A stretch of DNA of 64,000 bases, from positions 558,001-622,000 of the forward strand of contig RDEW01000033.1 in NCBI GenBank assembly GCA_011109175.1, in the 5' to 3' direction. Below are positions 9,082 through 57,934 of this stretch, piece after piece. The notes beneath the pieces are model-generated. The model did not search any database and had not been told where the DNA came from. It worked only from the letters and a program-made list of their open reading frames with translations. This DNA comes from Dicyema japonicum (Eukaryota > Animalia > Dicyemida). Within the stretch, counting starts at the first letter, position 1. Each line of letters opens with the position of its first letter. Position numbers and translations under genes: made by a program.

Positions 9082-10075
9082 TTTATTATTATGGCACTTT
9101 CACGAAATGTTTATAGCCCCGCATGTGGAACACTCAAAGAAACAATATTTATGGTTAGTCTTTTCCATCTTCCTCTGTCGAATGCGAGTGATCTCAATTC
9201 GTCCAGGTCGTCCCCGTCTTTAGATTTTTTCTCACACGATTTAGGTCTTTGTTTAGGCAGTCGGAAGTGTCGATCTAAGTCGTTCGCGTAAGGATTTGTC
9301 GCACTGTCAAAGTAATCTTCCATTGCATTGTTAGCGGATGCGTCCGGGTTCATTCTTAGTACATGCCCAAATACCCTCCACCGGGCATCTATCACATCCT
9401 TGCTGATGTACGAACACATACACTTGTTGTAGATACCAGTGGTTGATATTCTACGTGGCCACTCCATTCTGAGTAAGCTTCTTAGTTGCCTTCTATGAAA
9501 CGAATCCAGTTTCAATAGTTCGTTGAAGGAACTTCCCCATGTCCCAGCGTTGTACAGTAGGATCGGTTTCACAAACGCGTTGTAAAGCCTGCATCTGATG
9601 TCAATTCCAAGTCTTTTGGCTCTTAGCCATTCTTTCTTCAGTTTAGCCATTGCCGCATTTTCCAGTGTTTTCATCCTTAGTAGCGTCTCCTAGTAGAGAG
9701 CCGAGCTTATTAGTACGTCTCCATCTTTCATGATTAACATCGTCTTCTCTTTTGATTTCCGTAATTTCAGTTTTGTTTACATTTACACTGAGAAACCATT
9801 TCTCAATCTCCGCAGGTGGATTTTCTAGTAGGTGTTGGAGTGCGGTCACGTCCCGTGATACGAAATCCACATCATCCGCATAAGATGTCTCTTCTATGTC
9901 TCCTATATAGCATTTACGGAGGTCGCGGAAGATTCAAGGTGTATGGTGAATAGTAAAGGGGAGAGGGAATCACCCTGGAGGTGTCCCAATCGTTGTTTTG
10001 AAACTGCGGGAAGTTGCTCCTTCTGTCCTCACAGATAGTCTTGTGTTCGCAAGTAGTAGTCTGATTATCCTAAAC
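9082..10075 (-). mobile_element. RTE-clade LINE family A, 5'-truncated copy
   Basis: 'SYADDVDF', 187-aa ORF 9111-9674 ('LLYNAGTW...RWRVFGHVLRM'), (TAA)n tail at 9082-9091; highly similar to 56660-57647. Confidence 0.9.
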
Positions 10076-10946
10076 TACCTGAATCCATTGATTTTCAAAT
10101 ATTTTAATTCAAATTAATTTATAAATTTTATTATTAACTTTTATATTTACATAAATTTTCTATTTTCAAAAAGGATCTTAGAAACTTTTGCAAGGAGGGA
10201 TATTTTTGTATGTCGAATGATCCAAAGTGAATTCCCTGCAAGCTGAGGTAGAACGTAAGAACGATAACTCGTCGCTAAAAATGCCATTAATCCATATTTT
10301 TGGGATTTTTCTTATATAGGACTGATGGCTAGGCAACCCAGTGAGAATCAAATCTGACCAGTCTAGGGAATGCAGACAATTAGAGTTCACCTTAGCCTTC
10401 CACCTAAATACGAAATGAAGGTAAAGATTATATCCATGCTGCCTTGTTTGAAGTTTAGCAACGTGAGGAATATACTACGAGTGGTTCAGAGCTAAGTTCT
10501 TCGCATAATACTTCTACCTAGAACTAACTGATCTCCTCCATCTGTACACTATTCGATACCTGAGTTTTACCACCCGACGAATGAGCATTTGTTCTTAGAC
10601 TTGAATTACAAAGTATTCTCTGATTGTTGATTGTTATGTGAGTGATCTATCGTCCTTGTTTATTAAATTACTTTATGAGAAGATTGGTATTTGCTACATG
10701 AGACTGGCTGTCTGTTCTGCTCGTTGTTAATTCATTCCTAGTCAATCTTCCTTTACTTTGAATCTTACCGACTTTCTGTGGATAATTGAGTCATTTATTA
10801 CCCTTCTCAGTTCATATAGTGTGCAAATGCTCTGTGTAATCAATAGAAAGTAATAGGAAGATGAACTAAACTTGGAAATCCCACCCAGACAGAAAATTAA
10901 GAGTATCCCATCATTGGGGTGAAATTGTCACTAAATGAGTTATCAC

Positions 10947-12687: not shown

Positions 12688-12699
12688 CTGATCAATTTG

Positions 12700-13530
12700 A
12701 ATCGCTCTTCAGGAATGATGATGAACGCATAGCTCAATTTGTAGGACACCCCAGATCTTTGACTAAGCCAATTATACAAACGGCTCTGCAAAAGCTAACA
12801 ATGAGAGTCCGGGCATTGACGGTATCAACGGGGAACTTCTGAAACATTCGCCATACTCACTGGCCTATCAACTATGCAGCATGCTAAACGACATTTTTAT
12901 TAAACACGTGCCTGTCCCACTAGGGCAGGGAATTTTGTCACCTATACAGAAACATGGGAAGCTGGTTGGACCGGTAGAAAATCTCAGGCCTGTAATCCTT
13001 CTAACAACTCTACGAAAACTACTATCTCTGATTGTTCTGGAAAGGATTTCTCCTACTGTTGACGAATATCTGTCTCTGGGTCAAAGTGGATTCAGCAGAG
13101 GAAGGTCAACGGCGGATTTCGTATGGACACAGGTGCCATGACGCAGAGATTCCAGAAGGCTGTTCACATACTGGGGATCGATCTCTCTAAGTTGAAGGGA
13201 AAAATAGAACGGTTCAGCTAAGTGACTCCAGACCGACAAGGCCGATACGGGAATCCTGTCGGAATGTTTAACGTGATAAGAGTGAATGAAAACTCCAGAC
13301 CAAAGTGATATCAACTCACTACTTACGTAATTCTATCATGTTCCAACAGAGCTCCTCCCTCGACCCCACACAACTGGATACTCGTAGTTACATCACTACG
13401 GGTACATCACTTGGATCTTACGTATTATGGATTCTAGAAGCGTTGAAGAAAGCTCCTTTCCAGAGTTCAATATATCCATAACTTTGAATACCCTTTCCGG
13501 TTAGATTCGATCTTCATGGCCTTTGTCTAA
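12700..13530 (+). mobile_element. RTE-clade LINE RT remnant (relative of family A)
   Basis: 'PIQKHGKLVGPVENLRPVILL...GQSGFSRGRSTAD'; many lesions downstream. Confidence 0.75.
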
Positions 13531-16325: not shown

Positions 16326-16881
16326 CATGTGATTTATTTACTTAGAAGGCGTAGTGTTAGGATAGCATTAAAAAGGTTAACCTGCTCTCTTTACTTAACT
16401 GGATAAATTCTTAGAAGAATTTTTGAACTGTGGTTAAAAAAACTTATATCACTAAGCTCGTGATATTTTACTACTAACATCGTAAGTAATATTAACTACC
16501 ACTCTATGGTTGCTGATTTAGGCAGATGATTCTTCAAAATCTCCAGTGGAAGGAATTTGTACAAGGATATGCTTTGTTGAGTTTATGACGTCTCTGAAAC
16601 CGTCAATGATTGCGAAAAGAAATGAGTTTCAATCATAAGTAAATTAAGCAATCTATTGAAGGAACAACGAGTACTTAAATCCTATCATTTATGTTAAAAA
16701 AACGCTAATCGAACAAAAACATAGGATGAAGATCTTCGATAAAGAGTTACCTCTGCTTCTGACCAACCTGTGGAACTACAATGGCGTTAGGAATTCCATT
16801 GAATGCCCGAGTAATAAAAACCGACTGTAAAAATAATTAATGTTGAATCATATTACAATTTTAAGAAACCCCCAAAGGGGC

Positions 16882-17068
16882 CATGCGCCCAACCCAGAAG
16901 TACTGCAATACTGGGAGGACGCGCGGTATGGCGGAAGCAAGCTTCGCAACACATACCAAGTCACAAAAATAAGCATTATATCTTGCCCCTGTAAGGGCGT
17001 CCCAGATATAAAGCTGGGAAAGAAACAGATACTACACTTTGATCTTAGCCAAAAGGCCGAGAAGCGAC
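16882..17068 (-). ncRNA. RNU2: U2 spliceosomal snRNA gene
   Basis: Minus strand reads GTCGCTTCTCGGCCTTTTGGCTAAGATCAAAGTGTAGTATCTG (canonical U2 5' end and branch-point recognition GUAGUA), stem IIa UCCCAG/CUGGGA, Sm site AUUUUUG, stem IV loop UAUUGCAGUA; ~187 nt. Confidence 0.97.
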
Positions 17069-18900: not shown

Positions 18901-20665
18901 TTGATCAAAGAAAGAAATCACCTCAAAAAATCTAATTGGATCACATTAAAAACGAAACTCCGGATCAGAGCTCTAAACAACGAAATAAAGGACAGAGAGT
19001 TCAAGGCCCAGAAATTGAAGTGGAATCGGATTCTTACAAAGGTAAATCGCAACTGTAGTACCGGAGAAGTGTGGAAAGCCATCCGAAATGTTGCAAAGGG
19101 AAGAAACTTCCCCGAGGATGACTATACTTAACGAGACGTTAACAATTTGATAAAATTCTACACAAAAATTTCGTACAAGGAACACAGGAAGTCTGAAGTA
19201 CTTCTCTCTTCATGGAGAAAACTGAAGAAGGATTCTAACCCAGTTTACTTCTCGGATGAGGACGTGAAGAATGCGCTGCATTTTACAAGAACAACGTACT
19301 CTGCCGGTCCCGACAACATTCCAGCAGTGTTATTGAAGAACCTTGGAGATATTGGAGTCGGTTTTCTAACGTCGGTGTATAACTATTCAATTAATTGTAA
19401 TACCGTTGTTATGGAAGCAAGCCAACATCCGACCTGTACTGAAACCTGGGAAACCTAAGGAAGATCCAGCATCATTTAGACCTGTGTCATTGTTATGTTC
19501 CATATCGAAAATCCTGGAAAGGCTTGTGCTTGTGAGAATCAAGGCTTTCTTACCAGAAAAGGATTTTCAACACGGATTCAAGAGCGATTGTTCTACATCA
19601 ATGTACCTACAGAAATTAACCAACTTCATTAGAGATGGTTTTCAAACAAACCAAGGCATTTGAAACAGTCTTATGTTCCATTGATATTAACAAGGCCTTT
19701 GATTCTATTTCGAGAAAAATATTATCAAAGAAAATTTTCCAGTCGAGATCCCGGGGAAGCTTAAACTTTGGATAACAAATTTCTTAAGTGGACGGGGACG
19801 TGTATGCCTCAGAGGACTGAAATCAGTCTCACATCTTCTCCCAAACGGTGTCCCCTAAGGATCTCCTTTATCCCCGCTTTATTCAATTAATACCTGGCAG
19901 ACCTCCGACACCGGAATCCAATAACGATTTTCTACTTTCATATGCGGACGACATTGTTTTGGCCTCGCGTGATCGGGATATCCAAAATGCTACAGAAAGA
20001 TTACAAATTAACCTGGACCGACTCAACGCCTGGGTAATGAAGAACCGACTCACGATAAATTCCAGAAAGTCGGTCACGTCTATGTTTACTTCGGACAAAA
20101 GGTTGGGGAAGATGACTGTCAAGTTAAAATTGGACAACGTTGAAATCCCCTTCAGCAAATGTCAGAAGATCCTGGGCGTGACACTGGATACACACTTATG
20201 TTTGTCACCACACGTGGCAAACATTGTTCTGAAGTGCGAGAAGAGGATCAATGTATTAAAATGTTTATCTGGAATATGGAAGACAGGTACCCACCCGGTC
20301 TTGATGAACATTTACAAGCAATACATCGAACCATGCTTCTCGTACGCGTGTGCTTCGTGGGGACCTTCATTATCATGGACGAACACTAAGAAAATCGACG
20401 TTCAAAAGAAGGCTTTCAGAATGACGGAGCGGTGGTCTTGTGGGAGACACAAAACCGGACCGACTACTTTGGAGGCCCTCATTAAACAAAACTCCGGCAT
20501 GCGGGAAGGTGGCCCTGCAAATACAGTCAGCCGCCCTGTACGAGTTTGTGTGGGTACGAGGGAGGAGCACCGGGAAAGAATAAGGATTTTGACGAGCGCA
20601 TCGGGATCACGTGATAGTTAGTTTTGGTTTTACCGTGGTCTTGGGTGTTAAATAAATAAATAAAA
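18901..20665 (+). mobile_element. LINE family B (Jockey/I-like RT), longest copy, frameshifted
   Basis: 'SAGPDNIP', 'PASFRPVSLLCSISKILERL...QHGFK', 'SYADDI', 'KILGVTLDTHL'; (TAAA)n tail at ~20648-20665. Confidence 0.9.
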
Positions 20666-37260: not shown

Positions 37261-37280
37261 CATATTGTGTTAAGCTGTTA

Positions 37281-37511
37281 AGGTTTGACGCAGAAAGGGT
37301 TTGACGAGTGACGCCGTCATCAATGAATACTCACTGCGGAACTGGATTGTCTAGAAAGGACACTCACACAAGAAAAAGAAAAAAAGAAGTGAAGATCATT
37401 CCTTGGTTCTACTATTAGTTAAAATTAACTGTTCTTTACTTAAATAAAGTGTATGTCCTGCCTATGCGGAGCTATAAATACTATGGCTCTCGTGAAAAGG
37501 CTTTATTATTA
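37281..37511 (+). mobile_element. 5'-truncated copy of the tRNA-derived SINE
   Basis: High identity to the reverse complement of 49553-49770; (TTA)n tail; 11-bp TSD TTAAGCTGTTA (37270-37280, 37512-37522). Confidence 0.9.
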
Positions 37512-37849
37512 TTAAGCTGTTAGCTCCTAGAACTTTTAGTATAAGATTAAATCTTCCTTTAAATCTGTGTAGCCTTTACTAACTTAAAAAGCATTGATTC
37601 CAAGCTTTTCACAAAATACTTTGGTTTATGAAATGATATCTTAGTAATAAAACCATTAAGTTCATCATTCAACAAGTGAACTATCAAGTTGATGTTTACC
37701 ACTTGGCTCTTGACTTGTTAATCGTAGTTTCACAGTTTTCCAACTTTCACGGTTTTTTAGAATTTCTGAAAGTGTAGAAATTCCCAAATAAGGGTTCATT
37801 TTTATTTCACAGATATGGGATAATTCTGAGAGTCATATTTGATGTATTT

Positions 37850-48049: not shown

Positions 48050-48620
48050 AACGACAGTCAATGATGATCCGGATCCTACTTGCGAACACTGAAATACAAA
48101 TCTGGGTCGGTTCAAAGCGATCCCGTGAATTTGAGACACATATTGGCACTCTTCAAGGAGATTCTTTATCGCCACTACTATTTGTTATCCATCTGGAAGC
48201 TGACCTTGGGGAACTACGATCCAAAACTGAGCAGACTTCGATCACTTAAAAGAGAAACTCAATTGACATATGAGAAATGGAGAACAAAGTCGGTTCACTA
48301 CTCGGTGATTGGGAAGATGTTCAGCGAAGGAAAATGTTATCGATTCCTGCACTTAAAGACTAAAGTCCACGTGGATAAACTATTCACACGTCTCAACATC
48401 CATAAAGGTGCGTTTATACATTTATTCTGCCTATTTTGCTGTACAACACATGAACGTGGGGTTTGAATCAAACTTGTAATGAAAACCTTGCTTTTTACAG
48501 AAAACAACTGAAATCCCTATTGGACATAAGCTATCCGAAGGTGATCAGCAACCAGAACTTATACACTATCTGTAAATCTGCGACTGAAAAATGCTGATCA
48601 CTCACGACTTCCGAAAAATC
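48050..48620 (+). mobile_element. RTE-like RT remnant
   Basis: 'IGTLQGDSLSPLLFVIHLE'. Confidence 0.7.
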
Positions 48621-49552
48621 GCAATCTCAGGAGGAACGTGGAGGCGTCTGACTACAAAGATTATCCGGGTCCAGCACAAGCGACGTCAATGAATTAACTT
48701 TCTTGTTGCGAATGTGTGCAATAATAACACGTGGTTGACTGATAACTCATCTTTTTCATGTTCATAAACACCGAAATATCAGTTTGACATCTTTATCAAT
48801 ATATCCTTTCAAATTAAGGGGGTGTTGTATTTCTATCCCCCATGTTTATGATAGGCAAAATTAACAGCGAAACCTTTGACTTCTGATTTATTCAATAATT
48901 ACACGTAATTCTATTGATTTGAAAGGGATCCTTCTTAATTTCAGGATCATTACCCCCTCTTTCGTTATCTGGCAGAACAATCCTTTATTATGAAATTTAT
49001 TTACAATTGCACTCCATAATTGGTAGAATAATAGTTCACAAGATTTCCCTTATTTTCAAATAAGGAGATGGTGGAGTTGGCCCGTCAGACAAACGTAGTC
49101 ATAAGCCTCCGAGTAAGAGAAACCGAGTGATGACTACAGGATGGCCAATATCAGTAAACACATTAACTTGAGCTTCGTATCATCAGAGATTAATAGCAAT
49201 AGATTTTCCTGACTGATAGTCATAATGTTTACAATTTCCTAAGTCGTTTAGCAAGTAACGTCGGTAGTTGGGGAAGAAACGAGTGGCTTTCATCAAAGGA
49301 GTTATGTCCAAGATACTTCCAACAAGATCTAGAACATATAACCAGCCGATTAAAATGGAGTCAAAAAAATAAACACTTTTTTCAGATTTGAAATATGATA
49401 AAACGTATATTCCTCTTCAATTTTGAGTTACAAGTGACTCAACAGTCATTCTACACGAAAACTCTGGGACGTAAAATTTTACTCGGTGGCATATTCAATT
49501 TGCATCGAAAGATGTTTGTCTCCAGAACACTCTAATGTTTTTCCAAGGATAA

Positions 49553-49854
49553 TAATAATAAAGCCTTTTCACGAGAGCCATAGTATTTATAGCTCCGCAT
49601 AGGCAGGACATACACTGTATTTATGTTAAGAACAGTTAATTTTAACTAATCGTAGAACAAAGGAATGATCTTCACTTCTTTTTCTTGTGTGTGGATCCTT
49701 TCTAGACAATCCAGTTCCGAGTGAGTATCCACTGATGACGGCGTCACTCGTCAAACCCTTTCTGCATCGTAGATGCGTGGAACCTTCCACCAGGTGAACA
49801 GCAGCGAGATTTGAACCCATAGCCTAAGCCCGACACCTAACCACTATGCCACCT
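49553..49854 (-). mobile_element. Full-length tRNA-derived SINE (~302 bp) with RTE-LINE-derived 3' end
   Basis: Sense strand: A box TGGCATAGTGG, B box GGTTCAAATC, unique body, 3' ATGCGGAGCTATAAATACTATGGCTCTCGTGAAAAGGC + (TTA)n; 8-bp TSD AAGGATAA (49545-49552, 49855-49862). Confidence 0.9.
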
Positions 49855-50029
49855 AAGGATAAGTAAGAGTTAAAAAACTGGCAATTAATTAAAGTCATAA
49901 AAGACAATCACAGCACATTAACTTTTTATGCTCAAACCTCTTTAAAAATTGTATTTATAAAATTTTCAGAAAAATATGAACAAATAAAAATAATATTCAA
50001 AAAATTATATACCTTGAAGCTGCTTTACG

Positions 50030-50838
50030 GGAGTCAAAACCGATAATGGATGAAAAGACAAACATTATTGCGTATGCTGACGACGTAGACTTTATTTCAA
50101 ACGACAAAATACCGCTCACCCGCTTGATGGAAGAAGTGCCTAGAAGACTTGCCGAATGGTTCCTAACAGTAAATCCCGACAAGACTGAGGTAACTGAACT
50201 CAAGAGGGAAGAAACAAAGACGGAAAAGTACTGGCGCAAGTGCAAAAAGCTTGGCTCCCTCCTATGAGACCATGAAGAAATTACAAGAAGGAAAACCCTA
50301 GCACAAACTGCCCTCTCCAAGAACACCTGGCTCCACAAAAAAGGCCTTGACATTATAACAAAAACTCGATTATACAACTCGCTAGTGAAACCCATACTAC
50401 TGTATAACGCTGGTACCTGGGCCTGCTCAAGAAATGAAGAGGCTTAATGCGCTTGATAGAGACCAACTACGGCATATGATGTTCGAAAGAAGTGATACGA
50501 AAATGTCATCTATTCTTTTTTATAAGAGGACAAAGACCTCAGTAATTTCTAATGAGATTCTGGATACACGATGGAGGCTTTTCGGCCATATTCTGCGACT
50601 GGACCTAGATGCTTCCGCGAACGTAGTTATGGAGGATTACTTCATGTTGGAGGCTCCTCGTTTCCGTGGTCGCCCAAGGACGAGACTGCCAGTCGATCTC
50701 GACGAGGTCCTCAAAGAAATGTGACGGTTACTGCGGCTTTGAATAGGAGGAAGTGGATGAAACTAACCAGTGATTTGCTAACTCGTGTACACATGCTTTG
50801 TCAAGTCCTATGACATAGCGATAAGTGCTAATAATAAT
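50030..50838 (+). mobile_element. RTE-clade LINE 3' part, second subfamily
   Basis: 'IAYADDVDF', 'KKLGSLL', 'RWRLFGHILRL...RGRPRTRLP'; (TAA)n tail near 50829-50838. Confidence 0.85.
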
Positions 50839-54299: not shown

Positions 54300-55100
54300 T
54301 CAACAAGGAAATTACCAAATCTTAAAAGACAAAAGCGTGAAACGTTGTGAGAAGCTATCCAAAGTTCTCATTGGAAACCCTTCTATGAAGGAGTTCTGGA
54401 ACAAAATTAAATTTTAAGAGGTCCACCACCGATCGACACAAAGATGTCCATGTGGAATCAAACTCCTTAATGAAGTTTTGTACATCTATATCCCACAAAA
54501 ACTCGAACGACCACCAAGTCTATCTGAAGAAGATAAATCAAGACAATCAAATTATTGTACCTGGTATGAAATCCGACGAGCATTCTCAACCAGTGGAGGT
54601 CATAGAAGAAATGCTTGATTCTGACCCCATATTTTCTCATCTACGGATTGAGATTTTCCCAACAAAATCATTTGTAACATTGTTTACTACGTGTAAACGG
54701 AACGACAACATCAAAACAATAATCCTCCTTAATAATAAGATTATTAAAATGAATAGCACACAAACATCATGGGAGTTATGTTTGACCAGGGACTTTCTTA
54801 TCCCTAACATGTTTTGACAGTCCTGGATTAAGAGAATGATAATCCTAAAATCGTCTTAAAAGCTCTTGGAGCAATGCTGGATCTCTTACTAATATCTAAG
54901 ACAATTTGCCTGACCAGTAGTGACTATGAGAGTGCAACGTGGTTAATGGACATTTCCCATACCTCAATGAATAAATTGAACAAGATCCACGAAGCTATCA
55001 ACAGAATTATCGGCCATAATTTACAGTCTACGACTTTTGAATCACTTCTACTCAAACCACAACGAAAATTAGTGAGGGAGACAAATTTAAAAAAGTGCCT
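54300..55100 (+). mobile_element. Very decayed non-LTR RT remnant
   Basis: 'EFWNKIK', 'PGMKSD', 'DLLLISK...ATWL' in broken frames. Confidence 0.45.
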
Positions 55101-55309
55101 TTACGACATTGTTATCAAATACATCAAAAATCACTAGAGATACAAAATGACTCAGAACCCTATATGGAGAGCGGTTCAGAATGTCAAAATGCCGTCCAAC
55201 CTTCAAATTCTCATCTTAGTCTGATGTTCCCCCTCGAGCACACTCAAGCACGTATGTTACCAGTGGATGCTTTCCCTTTTTGTGATATAATTGGATATAC
55301 CAATGGTGG

Positions 55310-55690
55310 TGTATATGTTATGTTATCCAAATTAAGTCGTGTCCGACCCTTGAGATCTCATGAACCAATTTTCTCCACTCTCTCCGATCCGTCGCAATTT
55401 GGAGTAGCCTTGATATAGGCATTCCCATGACGTCTTCTACCGTGGATAGCCACTGAGTCCTCGGTCGACCAGGTCTTCTCTTCCCAGTAATATTGCTCAC
55501 CATAATGGTTCTTTCCAGGGAATCAGAGCGGACAACATGCCCAAAGAACGCCAATCTGTGTTTTTTCTATTCTTCCTTCTAGCGAAATGTATGCCTCCAC
55601 CCGTTTGAGTACATCGGTGTTTGTTATTTTGGAAGTCCAAGGGATTCTTAGTAAACTCCTCCAGCACCAAAGTTCAAAAGCATCAATTTT
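55310..55690 (-). mobile_element. BovB-like RTE LINE 3' fragment
   Basis: 'DAFELWCWRSLLRIPWTSKITN', 'FFGHVVR...GKRRPGRPRTQWL...DRREWR'; 3' end GGGTCGGACACGACTTAA plus TAACA repeats. Confidence 0.8.
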
Positions 55691-55829
55691 TCATCTATCC
55701 GCCTTTTTGTGAGTATAATGTAATATATTATCACGCCCTAAAATTAGATCACTACCCGAACATGCCAGATATTGCAAATCATTGCAGAGAGCTACGCTAA
55801 AAGGCAAACACGTCAGACGAGAGTAAAAA

Positions 55830-57647
55830 AAAGAGCTTAATATCCAACAAAGGGAACTAAATGGAAAATCAAAAAGATGAACAGAAAACACTCACGGGAA
55901 ATTATTACATCCCGATTAAAAGATGTGGAATGCCTAAAGACAATTCAAGGATGTATGCGGCTTTGCGGCTGCTGCGGACAAAGAAAGGACAAAACACCCT
56001 TCACATCAAAGACAAAGATGGAAAATTCGTGGGTAACCCGGAAAAAAAGCAGAATTGATTGCACTACACTTCGAAACACTGTTGAATAAAGAAAATAAGG
56101 ACTTTCCCCCTTTCCAAGGAGAAGCAACGGCGCTAAAAATCCCAATCACAGTGGAAGAGGTGGAATTAACGAAATAAACTAAAGAACAACAAGAGTGCTA
56201 GGCCGGATAACATAAGCCCTGAGCTCCTAAAATATGGGCCAAAAAAACTTAGCGACACAATTGCAAAAACCTTAAATGACATCTTTGAAACTGATACCGA
56301 TCTAGGACTTGGAAATGGATTATTAATACCCATACAAAAACCGAACAAATCAAAGGGACCAATAAAAAATCTCCACCCGATAATACTTCTGAATTCGATA
56401 CGCAAGGTGCTGGCAAACATTGCACTAAGCCGGATAAAGGGTATGGCGGACCTACCAGCAAGTCAAAGTGGGTTCCGAACAGGGAGGTCTACGGCAGACA
56501 TTGTATGGAGCCACAGATGGCGCTGCGCAACGCACCAAAGATTCAAGAGCGCAACGACCGTGTTGGGAATAGATCTTTCCAGAGCTTTCGACTCAATACA
56601 GACAGAAACTGATAAATGTGCTTGAAAATATTGGATGAATCGTCGGTTAGGATAATCAGTCTACTACTTGCGAACACAAGACTATCTGTGAGGACAGAAG
56701 GAGCAACTTCCCGCAGTTTCAAAACAACGATTGGGACACCCCAAGGTGATTCCCTTTCCCTTTACTATTCACCATATACCATGAATCTGCACTCCGCGAT
56801 CTCCGTAAATGCTACATAGGAGACATAGAAGAGACATCTTAAGCGGATGATGTAGATTTCGAATCACGGGATGCGACCGAACTCCATCACCTACTAGAAA
56901 ATGCACCTGCGGAGCTTGAGAAATGGTTTCTCAGCGTAAATGAAAACAAAACTGAAATTAAGGAAATCAAAAGAGAAAACTAAATTACTCATGAAAGATG
57001 GATACGTAGTAATAAGCTCGGCTCTCTACTAGGAGACGCTACTAAGGAGGAAAACACTGGAAAATGCGGCAATGGCTAAACTGAAGAAAGGATGGCTAAG
57101 AGCCAAAGGACATGGAATTGACATCAGATGCATGCTTTACAACGGGTTTGTGAAACCGATCCTACTGTACAACGCTGGAACATAGGGAAGTTCCTTCAAC
57201 GAACTATTGAAACTGGATTCATTTCATAGAAAGGAACTAAGAAGCTTACTCAGAATGGAGTGGCCACGTAGAATATCAACCACTGGTATTTACAACAAGT
57301 GTATGTGATTTACATCAGCAAGGATGTGATAGATGTCCGGTGGAGGGTATTTGGGCATGTACTAAGAATGAACCCGGACCCACTCGCTAACAAAGCTATA
57401 GAAGATTACTTTGACAGACGAAAACCCTTCCGCACGATTAGATCGACACTTCCGACTGCCTTAAACAAAGACCTAAATCGTGTGAGAAAAAATCTAAAGA
57501 CGGGTGACGACCTGGACGAATTGAGATCACTCGCATTCGATAGAGGAAGATGGAAAAGACTAACTATAAATATTGTTTCTTTGAGTGTTCCACATGCGGG
57601 GCTATAAACACTATGGCTTTCGTGAAAGGTGCCATAATAATAATGTA
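55830..57647 (+). mobile_element. RTE-clade LINE family A, long copy with frameshifts
   Basis: 'KNLHPIILLNSIRK', 'SQSGFRTGRSTADIVW', 'GIDLSRAFDS', 'GTPQGDS'; ORF end at 57607; (TAA)n tail at ~57634-57645. Confidence 0.92.
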
Positions 57648-57934
57648 ATCTATACTGCCACTGACACGTCTTGTATCGCTTTATAGATTGCATGTGCTTA
57701 TTCTGTTCTACTTGATTCCTAAAAACTCATATGAAAAGACATCAAAAGCCTCCATTGAGCAGCCACAAAGCCTTTAACGTTCAAGATTCATTGAAGATTG
57801 CAGAGGAGATGTTGCAAGAAATGCGTGAAAATTCCCTGATCATTACTTTTTAATTATTTTATTTTTAAAAAAAAGATTAATGATTTTAAATAAAATAAAT
57901 AAACCCGGGCGTAATACCTAATGTGATCACAATA

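Follow-up and report, generated by a model that had tools for sequence, protein, structure and literature searches.

The window analysed here, a 64,000-nucleotide stretch of the Dicyema japonicum genome, contains a short element that the initial annotation read as a tRNA-derived SINE sharing its 3' end with RTE-type LINEs resident in the same DNA. This raises two questions: whether the element belongs to a mobile family, and whether a LINE-encoded enzyme copies that family by way of the shared end. The reading was borne out by the copy number and target-site duplications of the family, by its tRNA-similar head, by the homology of the tails and by their common fold. The element very probably represents a SINE with a Pol III head and a ~42-nt RTE-LINE-derived 3' structure, which would be copied in trans by a LINE reverse transcriptase (RT).

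The SINE in the window and its family

The element proper (SINE copy 1, 302 bp) lies on the minus strand at 49551–49852 and reads from 49852 to 49551. Its tRNA-like head (49793–49852) carries an A box, TGGCATAGTGG, at 49851–49841 and a B box, GGTTCAAATCT, at 49817–49807. The head is followed by a body of ~190 nt (49605–49792), a 42-nt LINE-like structured 3' region (49563–49604), in which a 4-bp outer helix (GCCU/AGGC) encloses a bulged hairpin of 12 bp and its 5-nt loop, and a (TTA)n microsatellite tail (49551–49562). The flanking target-site duplications, TTATCCTTAG on the 5' side (49853–49862, minus strand) and TTATCCTTGG on the 3' side (49543–49552, minus strand), amount to 8 bp with one mismatch, or to 10 bp when the first TTA of the 3' duplication, which is ambiguous with the tail, is counted. 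The interval first assigned to the element, 49545–49862, extends from duplication to duplication, and the element's length of 302 bp, its two boxes, its (TTA)n tail and its 8-bp duplication had all been described correctly, apart from the mismatch.

A second SINE copy, which has no head, is located at 37287–37514 on the plus strand. It is 5'-truncated at consensus position 99, is flanked by 11-bp duplications (TTAAGCTGTTA, at 37270–37280 and 37512–37522), and is 91% identical to the first copy by BLAST and 97% identical to the family consensus. The putative partner LINE, family A (LINE-A), is likewise present at two positions, 55766–57650 and 9083–10098, in line with the earlier count of two copies of each partner in 64 kb. 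At its gathering thresholds, Rfam matched the window only at a complete U2 spliceosomal snRNA gene (16878–17068, minus strand; 140.7 bits, model positions 1–192), and ARAGORN found no tRNA in the whole window.

A search of the genome (67.5 Mb; 67,542,437 bases in 377 pieces) yielded 2,203 first-look SINE candidates. The 40 copies that were scored are 89–92% identical to the window copy, and an exact 27-mer spanning the unique end and the tail occurs 234 times genome-wide. Since three copies of the young family were present in ~255 kb of DNA chosen independently of the SINE, the copy number is estimated to be of the order of a thousand. Thirty aligned copies were sharply delimited, ended in (TTA)n and lay in unrelated flanking sequence, and 26 of them are flanked by target-site duplications of 7–20 bp, a dispersal characteristic of SINE2-type elements. 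Their majority consensus of ~325 nt comprises the head, the body, the structured 3' region and (TTA)n, and the copies differ from it by 0.3–4.2% (mean 2.1%). The window copy, in contrast to this consensus, diverges by 5.1%, lacks ~5 nt at its 5' end and is without a 9-bp head segment, GGCTTAAGT. Because 28 of the 30 aligned copies carry this segment, the shortened head that had been noted is true of the window copy but is not a property of the family. These results indicate that the element in the window is one copy of a young, abundant and dispersed tRNA-derived SINE family.

The D. japonicum assembly (67.5 Mb, 377 scaffolds, GC 36.7%) is gene-poor, yet repeats make up 49% of it (PMC6736024), so the presence of a SINE, which the initial annotation had noted as rarely reported from such reduced genomes, is unsurprising. 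The genome paper names only LINE-1-like ORF2 copies among its repeats, and SINEs are analysed neither there nor in its supplements (PMC6736024). A literature search retrieved no paper pairing Dicyema with SINEs, and six 20-mers, which sampled the head, body and tail of the SINE as well as the tail of LINE-A, occurred in no paper text that was searched. Within a well-known class of elements, the SINE forms a new family, new in the sense of this literature search.

The consensus A and B boxes are TGGCTTAGTGG and GGTTCGAATCT, respectively, and a tRNA-related head with both boxes on a short non-coding element is again typical of SINE2-type elements. The consensus head best matched the tRNA-Ile(UAU/AAU) of this genome, at ~71% over 66 nt, with a local score of 52 compared to 22.4 ± 3.0 (maximum 35) for shuffled heads. 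The source tRNA, which the initial annotation had left to be identified, is therefore provisionally taken to be tRNA-Ile, the best of an incomplete set of 60 genes typed by ARAGORN among the 62 best Rfam tRNA matches. The cloverleaf is degenerate: ARAGORN reported a weak Leu-like cloverleaf for the consensus head only at a relaxed threshold and a weak tRNA-Leu in one of 10 full copies, and the Rfam tRNA model did not score the head in two SINE copies at E ≤ 10. The consensus contains no T4 run, where ~1.5 would be expected by chance, a difference that is not significant; the absence would fit Pol III transcription and is no evidence for it.

The body had been described as ~200 bp of unique sequence. 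Sensitive BLAST searches, however, detected older SINE relatives that share the body at 72–83%, share the hairpin tail as well, carry other tRNA-like heads and end in (TTA)- or (TAT)-type repeats, so that the body marks a local superfamily and not one family. The body matched neither 1.9 kb of LINE-A 3' sequence nor five LINE 5' ends, that of family A included, and core-only matches in three sampled loci (L076, L029 and L017) had no LINE frame downstream. No HDV-type ribozyme family was matched by Rfam at E ≤ 10 on either strand of two SINE copies, and helices drawn by hand in the body received no covariation support in the worn relatives. As a separate observation, five LINE 5' ends (L057:1104–1200, minus; L032:1240–1300, minus; L024:500–545, plus; L030:3050–3095, minus; L085:410–450, plus) share a motif 20–50 nt ahead of an ATGTCT start, with a covarying 3–4-bp stem (GAGG/CCTC, GAGC/GCTC or GAG/CTC) and a loop of the form TGGTGACGTG.

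The shared 3' end and the RTE-like LINEs

The LINE-A copy at 55766–57650 (plus strand) is RTE-like, 5'-truncated and decayed, with its stop codon at 57605–57607, its 3' structure at 57590–57632 and a (TAA)n tail. The 38-nt SINE tail aligned by hand with 57594–57632 at 34 of 39 positions, and BLAST found 31 of 34 nucleotides identical to 57594–57627 (E 6e-8 in the 64-kb window), confirming the reported match of ~34/39 to the final codons and 3' UTR of family A. A further match, placed at 9092–9125 on the minus strand, does belong to a second, 5'-truncated LINE-A copy (9083–10098, minus strand), but the 3' hairpin of that copy carries a 9-nt deletion. The similarity, whose inconsistency across copies had been named as the finding that would count against the pairing, holds throughout: SINE consensus positions 275–325 aligned with all 29 other sampled LINE-A copies at 77–83%. 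The copy at 55766–57650, a member of a rarer and older tail variant, is for this reason closer to the SINE (91%). On these alignments, the SINE and RTE-like LINEs have homologous 3' ends over the last ~42 nt ahead of the SINE's tail.

Folding of the tails, a check suggested at the outset as a search for a conserved stem-loop, revealed a two-helix fold common to the SINE, LINE-A and a further family, A2. In both the SINE and the LINE, a bulged hairpin of 12 bp, closed by a loop of 5 nt, sits inside an outer 4-bp helix. The outer helix is GCAC/GUGC in the LINE and GCCU/AGGC in the SINE, with two pairs altered on both sides (A-U and C-G in the LINE forms, C-G and U-A in the SINE forms), and its two strands are the regions in which the SINE and the LINE differ most. 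The fold energies were −18.6 kcal/mol for the SINE (z −4.4), −14.7 kcal/mol for LINE-A (z −2.7) and −17.1 kcal/mol for A2 (z −3.6), whereas the decayed LINE-A copy of the window no longer folds well. In an alignment of 15 distinct tails, drawn from LINE-A and SINE variants, A2, another LINE and three of the older SINE relatives, 91.6% of the cells were paired, compared to 30–53% with the partners slid, and 7 of the 16 pairs were changed on both sides. The covariation score was 0.286, compared to 0.194 in shuffles, with 0 of 500 reaching it, for tails that are related to each other and a structure that was derived from these same sequences. A 3' terminus shared in both sequence and structure is what is seen in stringent SINE/LINE pairs.

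The 3' 400 nt of the window LINE-A copy gave at least 509 candidates genome-wide, and the best sampled copy encodes an RVT_1 domain in a frame of 562 aa. Its closest database relatives are at most 47% identical to it and are annotated only as endonuclease-reverse transcriptase; the full-length ones are ~980 aa long, have APE and RT domains and lie on 3.0–3.4-kb contigs. In addition, a minus-strand LINE-A copy in the sampled locus L032 overlaps the 5' end of another sampled copy (L050) at 97.6% and is similar to the endonuclease region in a homologue of 977 aa. Considered together but as separate pieces, from sampled copies that are all broken or truncated, these two parts would imply a LINE-A of ~3.0 kb whose frame is ~977 aa long and whose 5' UTR does not exceed ~70 nt. 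The LINE-A stop codon falls within the 5' arm of the shared hairpin, leaving a 3' UTR of 36 nt, and (TAA)n follows this UTR in all 29 other sampled copies, a short UTR that ends in a tandem repeat and not in poly(A) being characteristic of RTE elements, which are compact (~3.0–3.3 kb) and have a single frame for AP endonuclease and RT but no ORF1. These features suit the RTE clade, to which LINE-A is putatively assigned on their basis.

Open frames of LINE-A copies with at least 93% protein identity measure about 594–619 aa; none longer than ~620 aa was present among the 77 best-scored matches, in which no intact family-A source was seen. Copies at 96–99% protein identity have near-equal frames of 594, 597, 602, 602, 603, 603 and 619 aa, which suggests that in the young subfamily a common break, or else a second frame, lies between the endonuclease part and the RT part. 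A sister family, 64% identical to family A, has an open frame of 984 aa, and other endonuclease-bearing LINEs have frames of up to 1,108 aa.

Several neighbouring features of these LINEs were also recorded. Apparent 123-bp 5' repeats in L032 were considered as a plain 5' UTR and rejected, as they contain a piece of the LINE-A 3' region duplicated in inverted orientation. At L032:1293–1506, a LINE-A 3' copy truncated at position 1415 adjoins a LINE-A 5' part in the opposite orientation, and 92 nt are duplicated; this is a twin-priming-like or nested rearrangement. In the window, a Pfam search of the frames upstream of LINE-A (54452–55418) returned nothing, and this stretch does not belong to LINE-A. 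The truncated 5' end of the LINE-A copy adjoins a 395-bp 5'-truncated 3' fragment of a different LINE family (55314–55708, minus strand), of which the genome holds at least 513 candidates, with copies 91–94% identical. Its minus strand shows, by eye, a typical LINE C-terminus (GKRRPGRPR...DRREWR), and its 3' end has ATAAC-like repeats without an A-type hairpin. Decayed RTE-like RT fragments of other families lie at 48064–48576, 50004–50715, 12693–13132 and 19258–19724 on the plus strand and at 1542–1949 on the minus strand, and those with visible 3' ends (at 1542, 48579 and 50715) end in GTGC-(TAA)n. Proteins of Octopus sinensis (P0042, P0078 and P0100) are 49–55% identical to the LINE-A RT over 61–64% of the query, the highest in their list. 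This octopus is the host from which D. japonicum was collected for sequencing (PMC6736024), and the identity is too low for a recent host–parasite transfer.

The hairpin tail is carried by at least two RTE families. The tail of A2 has the same hairpin and 150 matches within two mismatches, and one A2 tail adjoins a LINE with an RT 58% identical to that of family A. In its 3' arm, TATGGCTCTCGTGAA, the SINE hairpin matches A2 exactly and departs from LINE-A. The SINE loop (AATAC), compared to AACAC in the window LINE-A, ATCAT in the major LINE-A form and AACAT in a second one, is closest to the rare or older LINE-A variants. The SINE tail is a mosaic within this LINE group, and because of this the enzyme donor is not nameable from sequence alone. 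Accordingly, of the initial proposal that family A is the partner, the tail homology stands in all sampled copies, but the partnership itself is not established.

Terminal repeats, insertion sites and the proposed copying enzyme

The terminal repeats of the two elements differ. Among exact 27-mers, the unique end of the SINE is followed by TTA in 234 cases and by TAA in none, whereas that of LINE-A is followed by TAA in 56 cases and by TTA in none. The SINE, with (TTA)n, and the LINE, with (TAA)n, therefore do not have the same repeat, as the members of a stringent pair would. Every other RTE-like 3' end in the sampled DNA reads GTGC-(TAA)n, and none carries (TTA)n. Nishiyama and Ohshima described how the RTE LINEs of animals end in A-rich repeats and some of the SINEs that go with them, such as AfroSINE and Sauria SINE, in T-rich ones (PMC6007223). 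Since the same split is documented in these other RTE-related pairs, the mismatch does not exclude dependence of the SINE on such a LINE.

In RTE-related SINE insertions, the first base of the duplication follows the terminal repeat, and a T-run lies ~10 bases upstream (PMC6007223). The SINE duplications studied here start with T in 18 of 26 cases and with A in 8, whereas the LINE-A duplications start with A in 7 of 9 (5'-truncated copies with a duplication and a scorable upstream flank), counts that are small and partly biased by the extension of matches into the A/T tail. Free of this bias, positions −13 to −8 of the SINE sites are T-rich (17 of 26 at −11 and 16 of 26 at −10, compared to ~31% in the genome), and position −1 is C in 13 of 26. 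The SINE insertion sites match the published RTE-related signature.

The following mechanism is proposed. Pol III would transcribe the SINE from the internal A and B boxes of its tRNA-like head. The SINE RNA would end in the ~42-nt two-helix structure that copies the 3' end of an RTE LINE (the last codons and the 36-nt 3' UTR), and a LINE RT acting in trans would recognise this structure and then copy the RNA at a nicked target by target-primed reverse transcription, as in the stringent SINE/LINE model. Such a reaction would leave the duplications, 5' truncations and microsatellite tail. The (UUA)n end of the SINE, or the (UAA)n end of the LINE, probably selects the priming site, because the SINE duplications mostly start with T and those of LINE-A with A. 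Candidate sources of the enzyme would be family A, A2 or the 64%-identical sister family with the 984-aa frame.

Which of these supplies the enzyme bears on the best-surviving alternative, namely that the SINE depends on another RTE family (A2, the sister family or a LINE with (TTA)n) and that its likeness to family A reflects only the common descent of RTE tails. We regard this as a serious contender, somewhat less probable than its negation. It would account for the A2-type 3' arm of the SINE hairpin (TATGGCTCTCGTGAA), and A2, with its 150 matches, does sit on a LINE with an RT 58% identical to that of family A; moreover, the sister family retains 984 aa, compared to about 594–620 aa in family A, whose repeat unit is never found on the SINE. 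However, A2 and all other LINE 3' ends in the sampled DNA, where the tail of the sister family was not seen, carry (TAA)n and none (TTA)n, and the loop and 5' arm of the SINE are nearer to the family-A variants (AACAC/AATAC).

A second alternative, which we consider unlikely, is that the family is extinct, a fossil whose source copies have all ceased to be transcribed or copied. The 5% divergence and damaged head of the window copy, and the lack of an intact family-A frame among the scored matches, would be expected of a fossil. The family as a whole, however, looks young: its copies lie 0.3–4.2% from the consensus, LINE-A 3' ends ~0.7%, and related RTE families keep frames of 984–1,108 aa. 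Given the assembly heterozygosity of 1.24% (PMC6736024), a divergence of 2% counts as recent.

Finally, the idea that the tail likeness is chance or convergence of AT-rich sequence, with the SINE using a relaxed, tail-independent route, could appeal to the shortness of the shared stretch (~42 nt, at 77–83% identity to most LINE-A copies) and to the differing microsatellites, but it is highly improbable and already largely refuted by the BLAST E value of 6e-8, by the position of the match at the extreme 3' end of both elements in all copies, by differences that are compensatory within a common fold, by the same hairpin in the older SINE relatives and by the SINE's lack of the poly(A) tail that the relaxed L1-type route needs.

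Copying in trans by a LINE RT through the shared 3' structure thus remains the preferred reading. A more far-reaching form of it is about evenly balanced, if anything slightly on the doubtful side: there may be an undescribed SINE superfamily, confined to dicyemids and marked by a conserved body of its own, in which this SINE is the youngest, and several RTE families, alike in presenting the two-helix 3' structure, may serve it. The compensatory differences between SINE and LINE would then mean that the enzyme reads the shape and not the sequence, and the complementary (UUA)n and (UAA)n ends would lead the two elements to different nick sites.

Comparison with known SINE/LINE pairs

The analysis leaves the known picture of SINE function unchanged. 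For a phylum whose repeats had only been counted, it defines one SINE family and two or more RTE LINE families, and the SINE copies may be of use as presence/absence markers when dicyemid species are compared. An attractive detail is the compensatory pairs within the common 3' structure, the presumed site of recognition; together with the opposite microsatellites, they offer a convenient natural test of what an RTE RT reads. To our knowledge, a two-helix tail with compensatory pairs between SINE and LINE has not been reported for the AfroSINE, Sauria SINE, Bov-tA or Au-like pairs.

UnaL2 and UnaSINE1 are the best-studied stringent pair, and their terminal repeat is common to SINE and LINE. The study of this eel pair by Kajikawa and Okada in 2002 is said to be the model for stringent recognition of a 3' stem-loop. 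Its conserved 3' hairpin, beside a short tandem repeat and common to SINE and LINE, has a counterpart in the hairpin described here, and the likeness would extend to recognition of a structure in trans by the RT, which in the present case is inferred from sequence. In contrast, UnaL2 belongs to the L2 clade and has the same repeat as its SINE, whereas the LINEs here are RTE-like and the repeats differ. The repeat split is awkward under the eel UnaL2 model, yet it is precedented in RTE pairs (PMC6007223), and the complementary microsatellites are accordingly an apparent oddity with published precedent.

In its organisation, the family also resembles the CORE, V, Deu, Ceph, Meta, Nin-DC and mollusc (PMC4758252) superfamilies, in which a central domain is shared, as one body is found here in several SINE families under different heads.

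The closest parallels are the RTE-dependent pairs AfroSINE/RTE1_LA, Sauria SINE/Bov-B, Bov-tA/BovB and plant Au-like SINEs/RTE (PMC6007223), which, as here, combine a tRNA-like head, A and B boxes and an RTE-derived 3' end. Duplications in such SINEs are mostly ~10–15 bp long, with T as the first base and a T-run ~10 nt upstream, as in D. japonicum, and the elephant and anole pairs likewise set a T-rich SINE repeat against an A-rich LINE repeat (PMC6007223). The present SINE differs from those of that study in belonging to a different sequence family in a dicyemid host, and the repeats of its pair, (TTA)n and (TAA)n, are exact complements, unlike those of the pairs described there.
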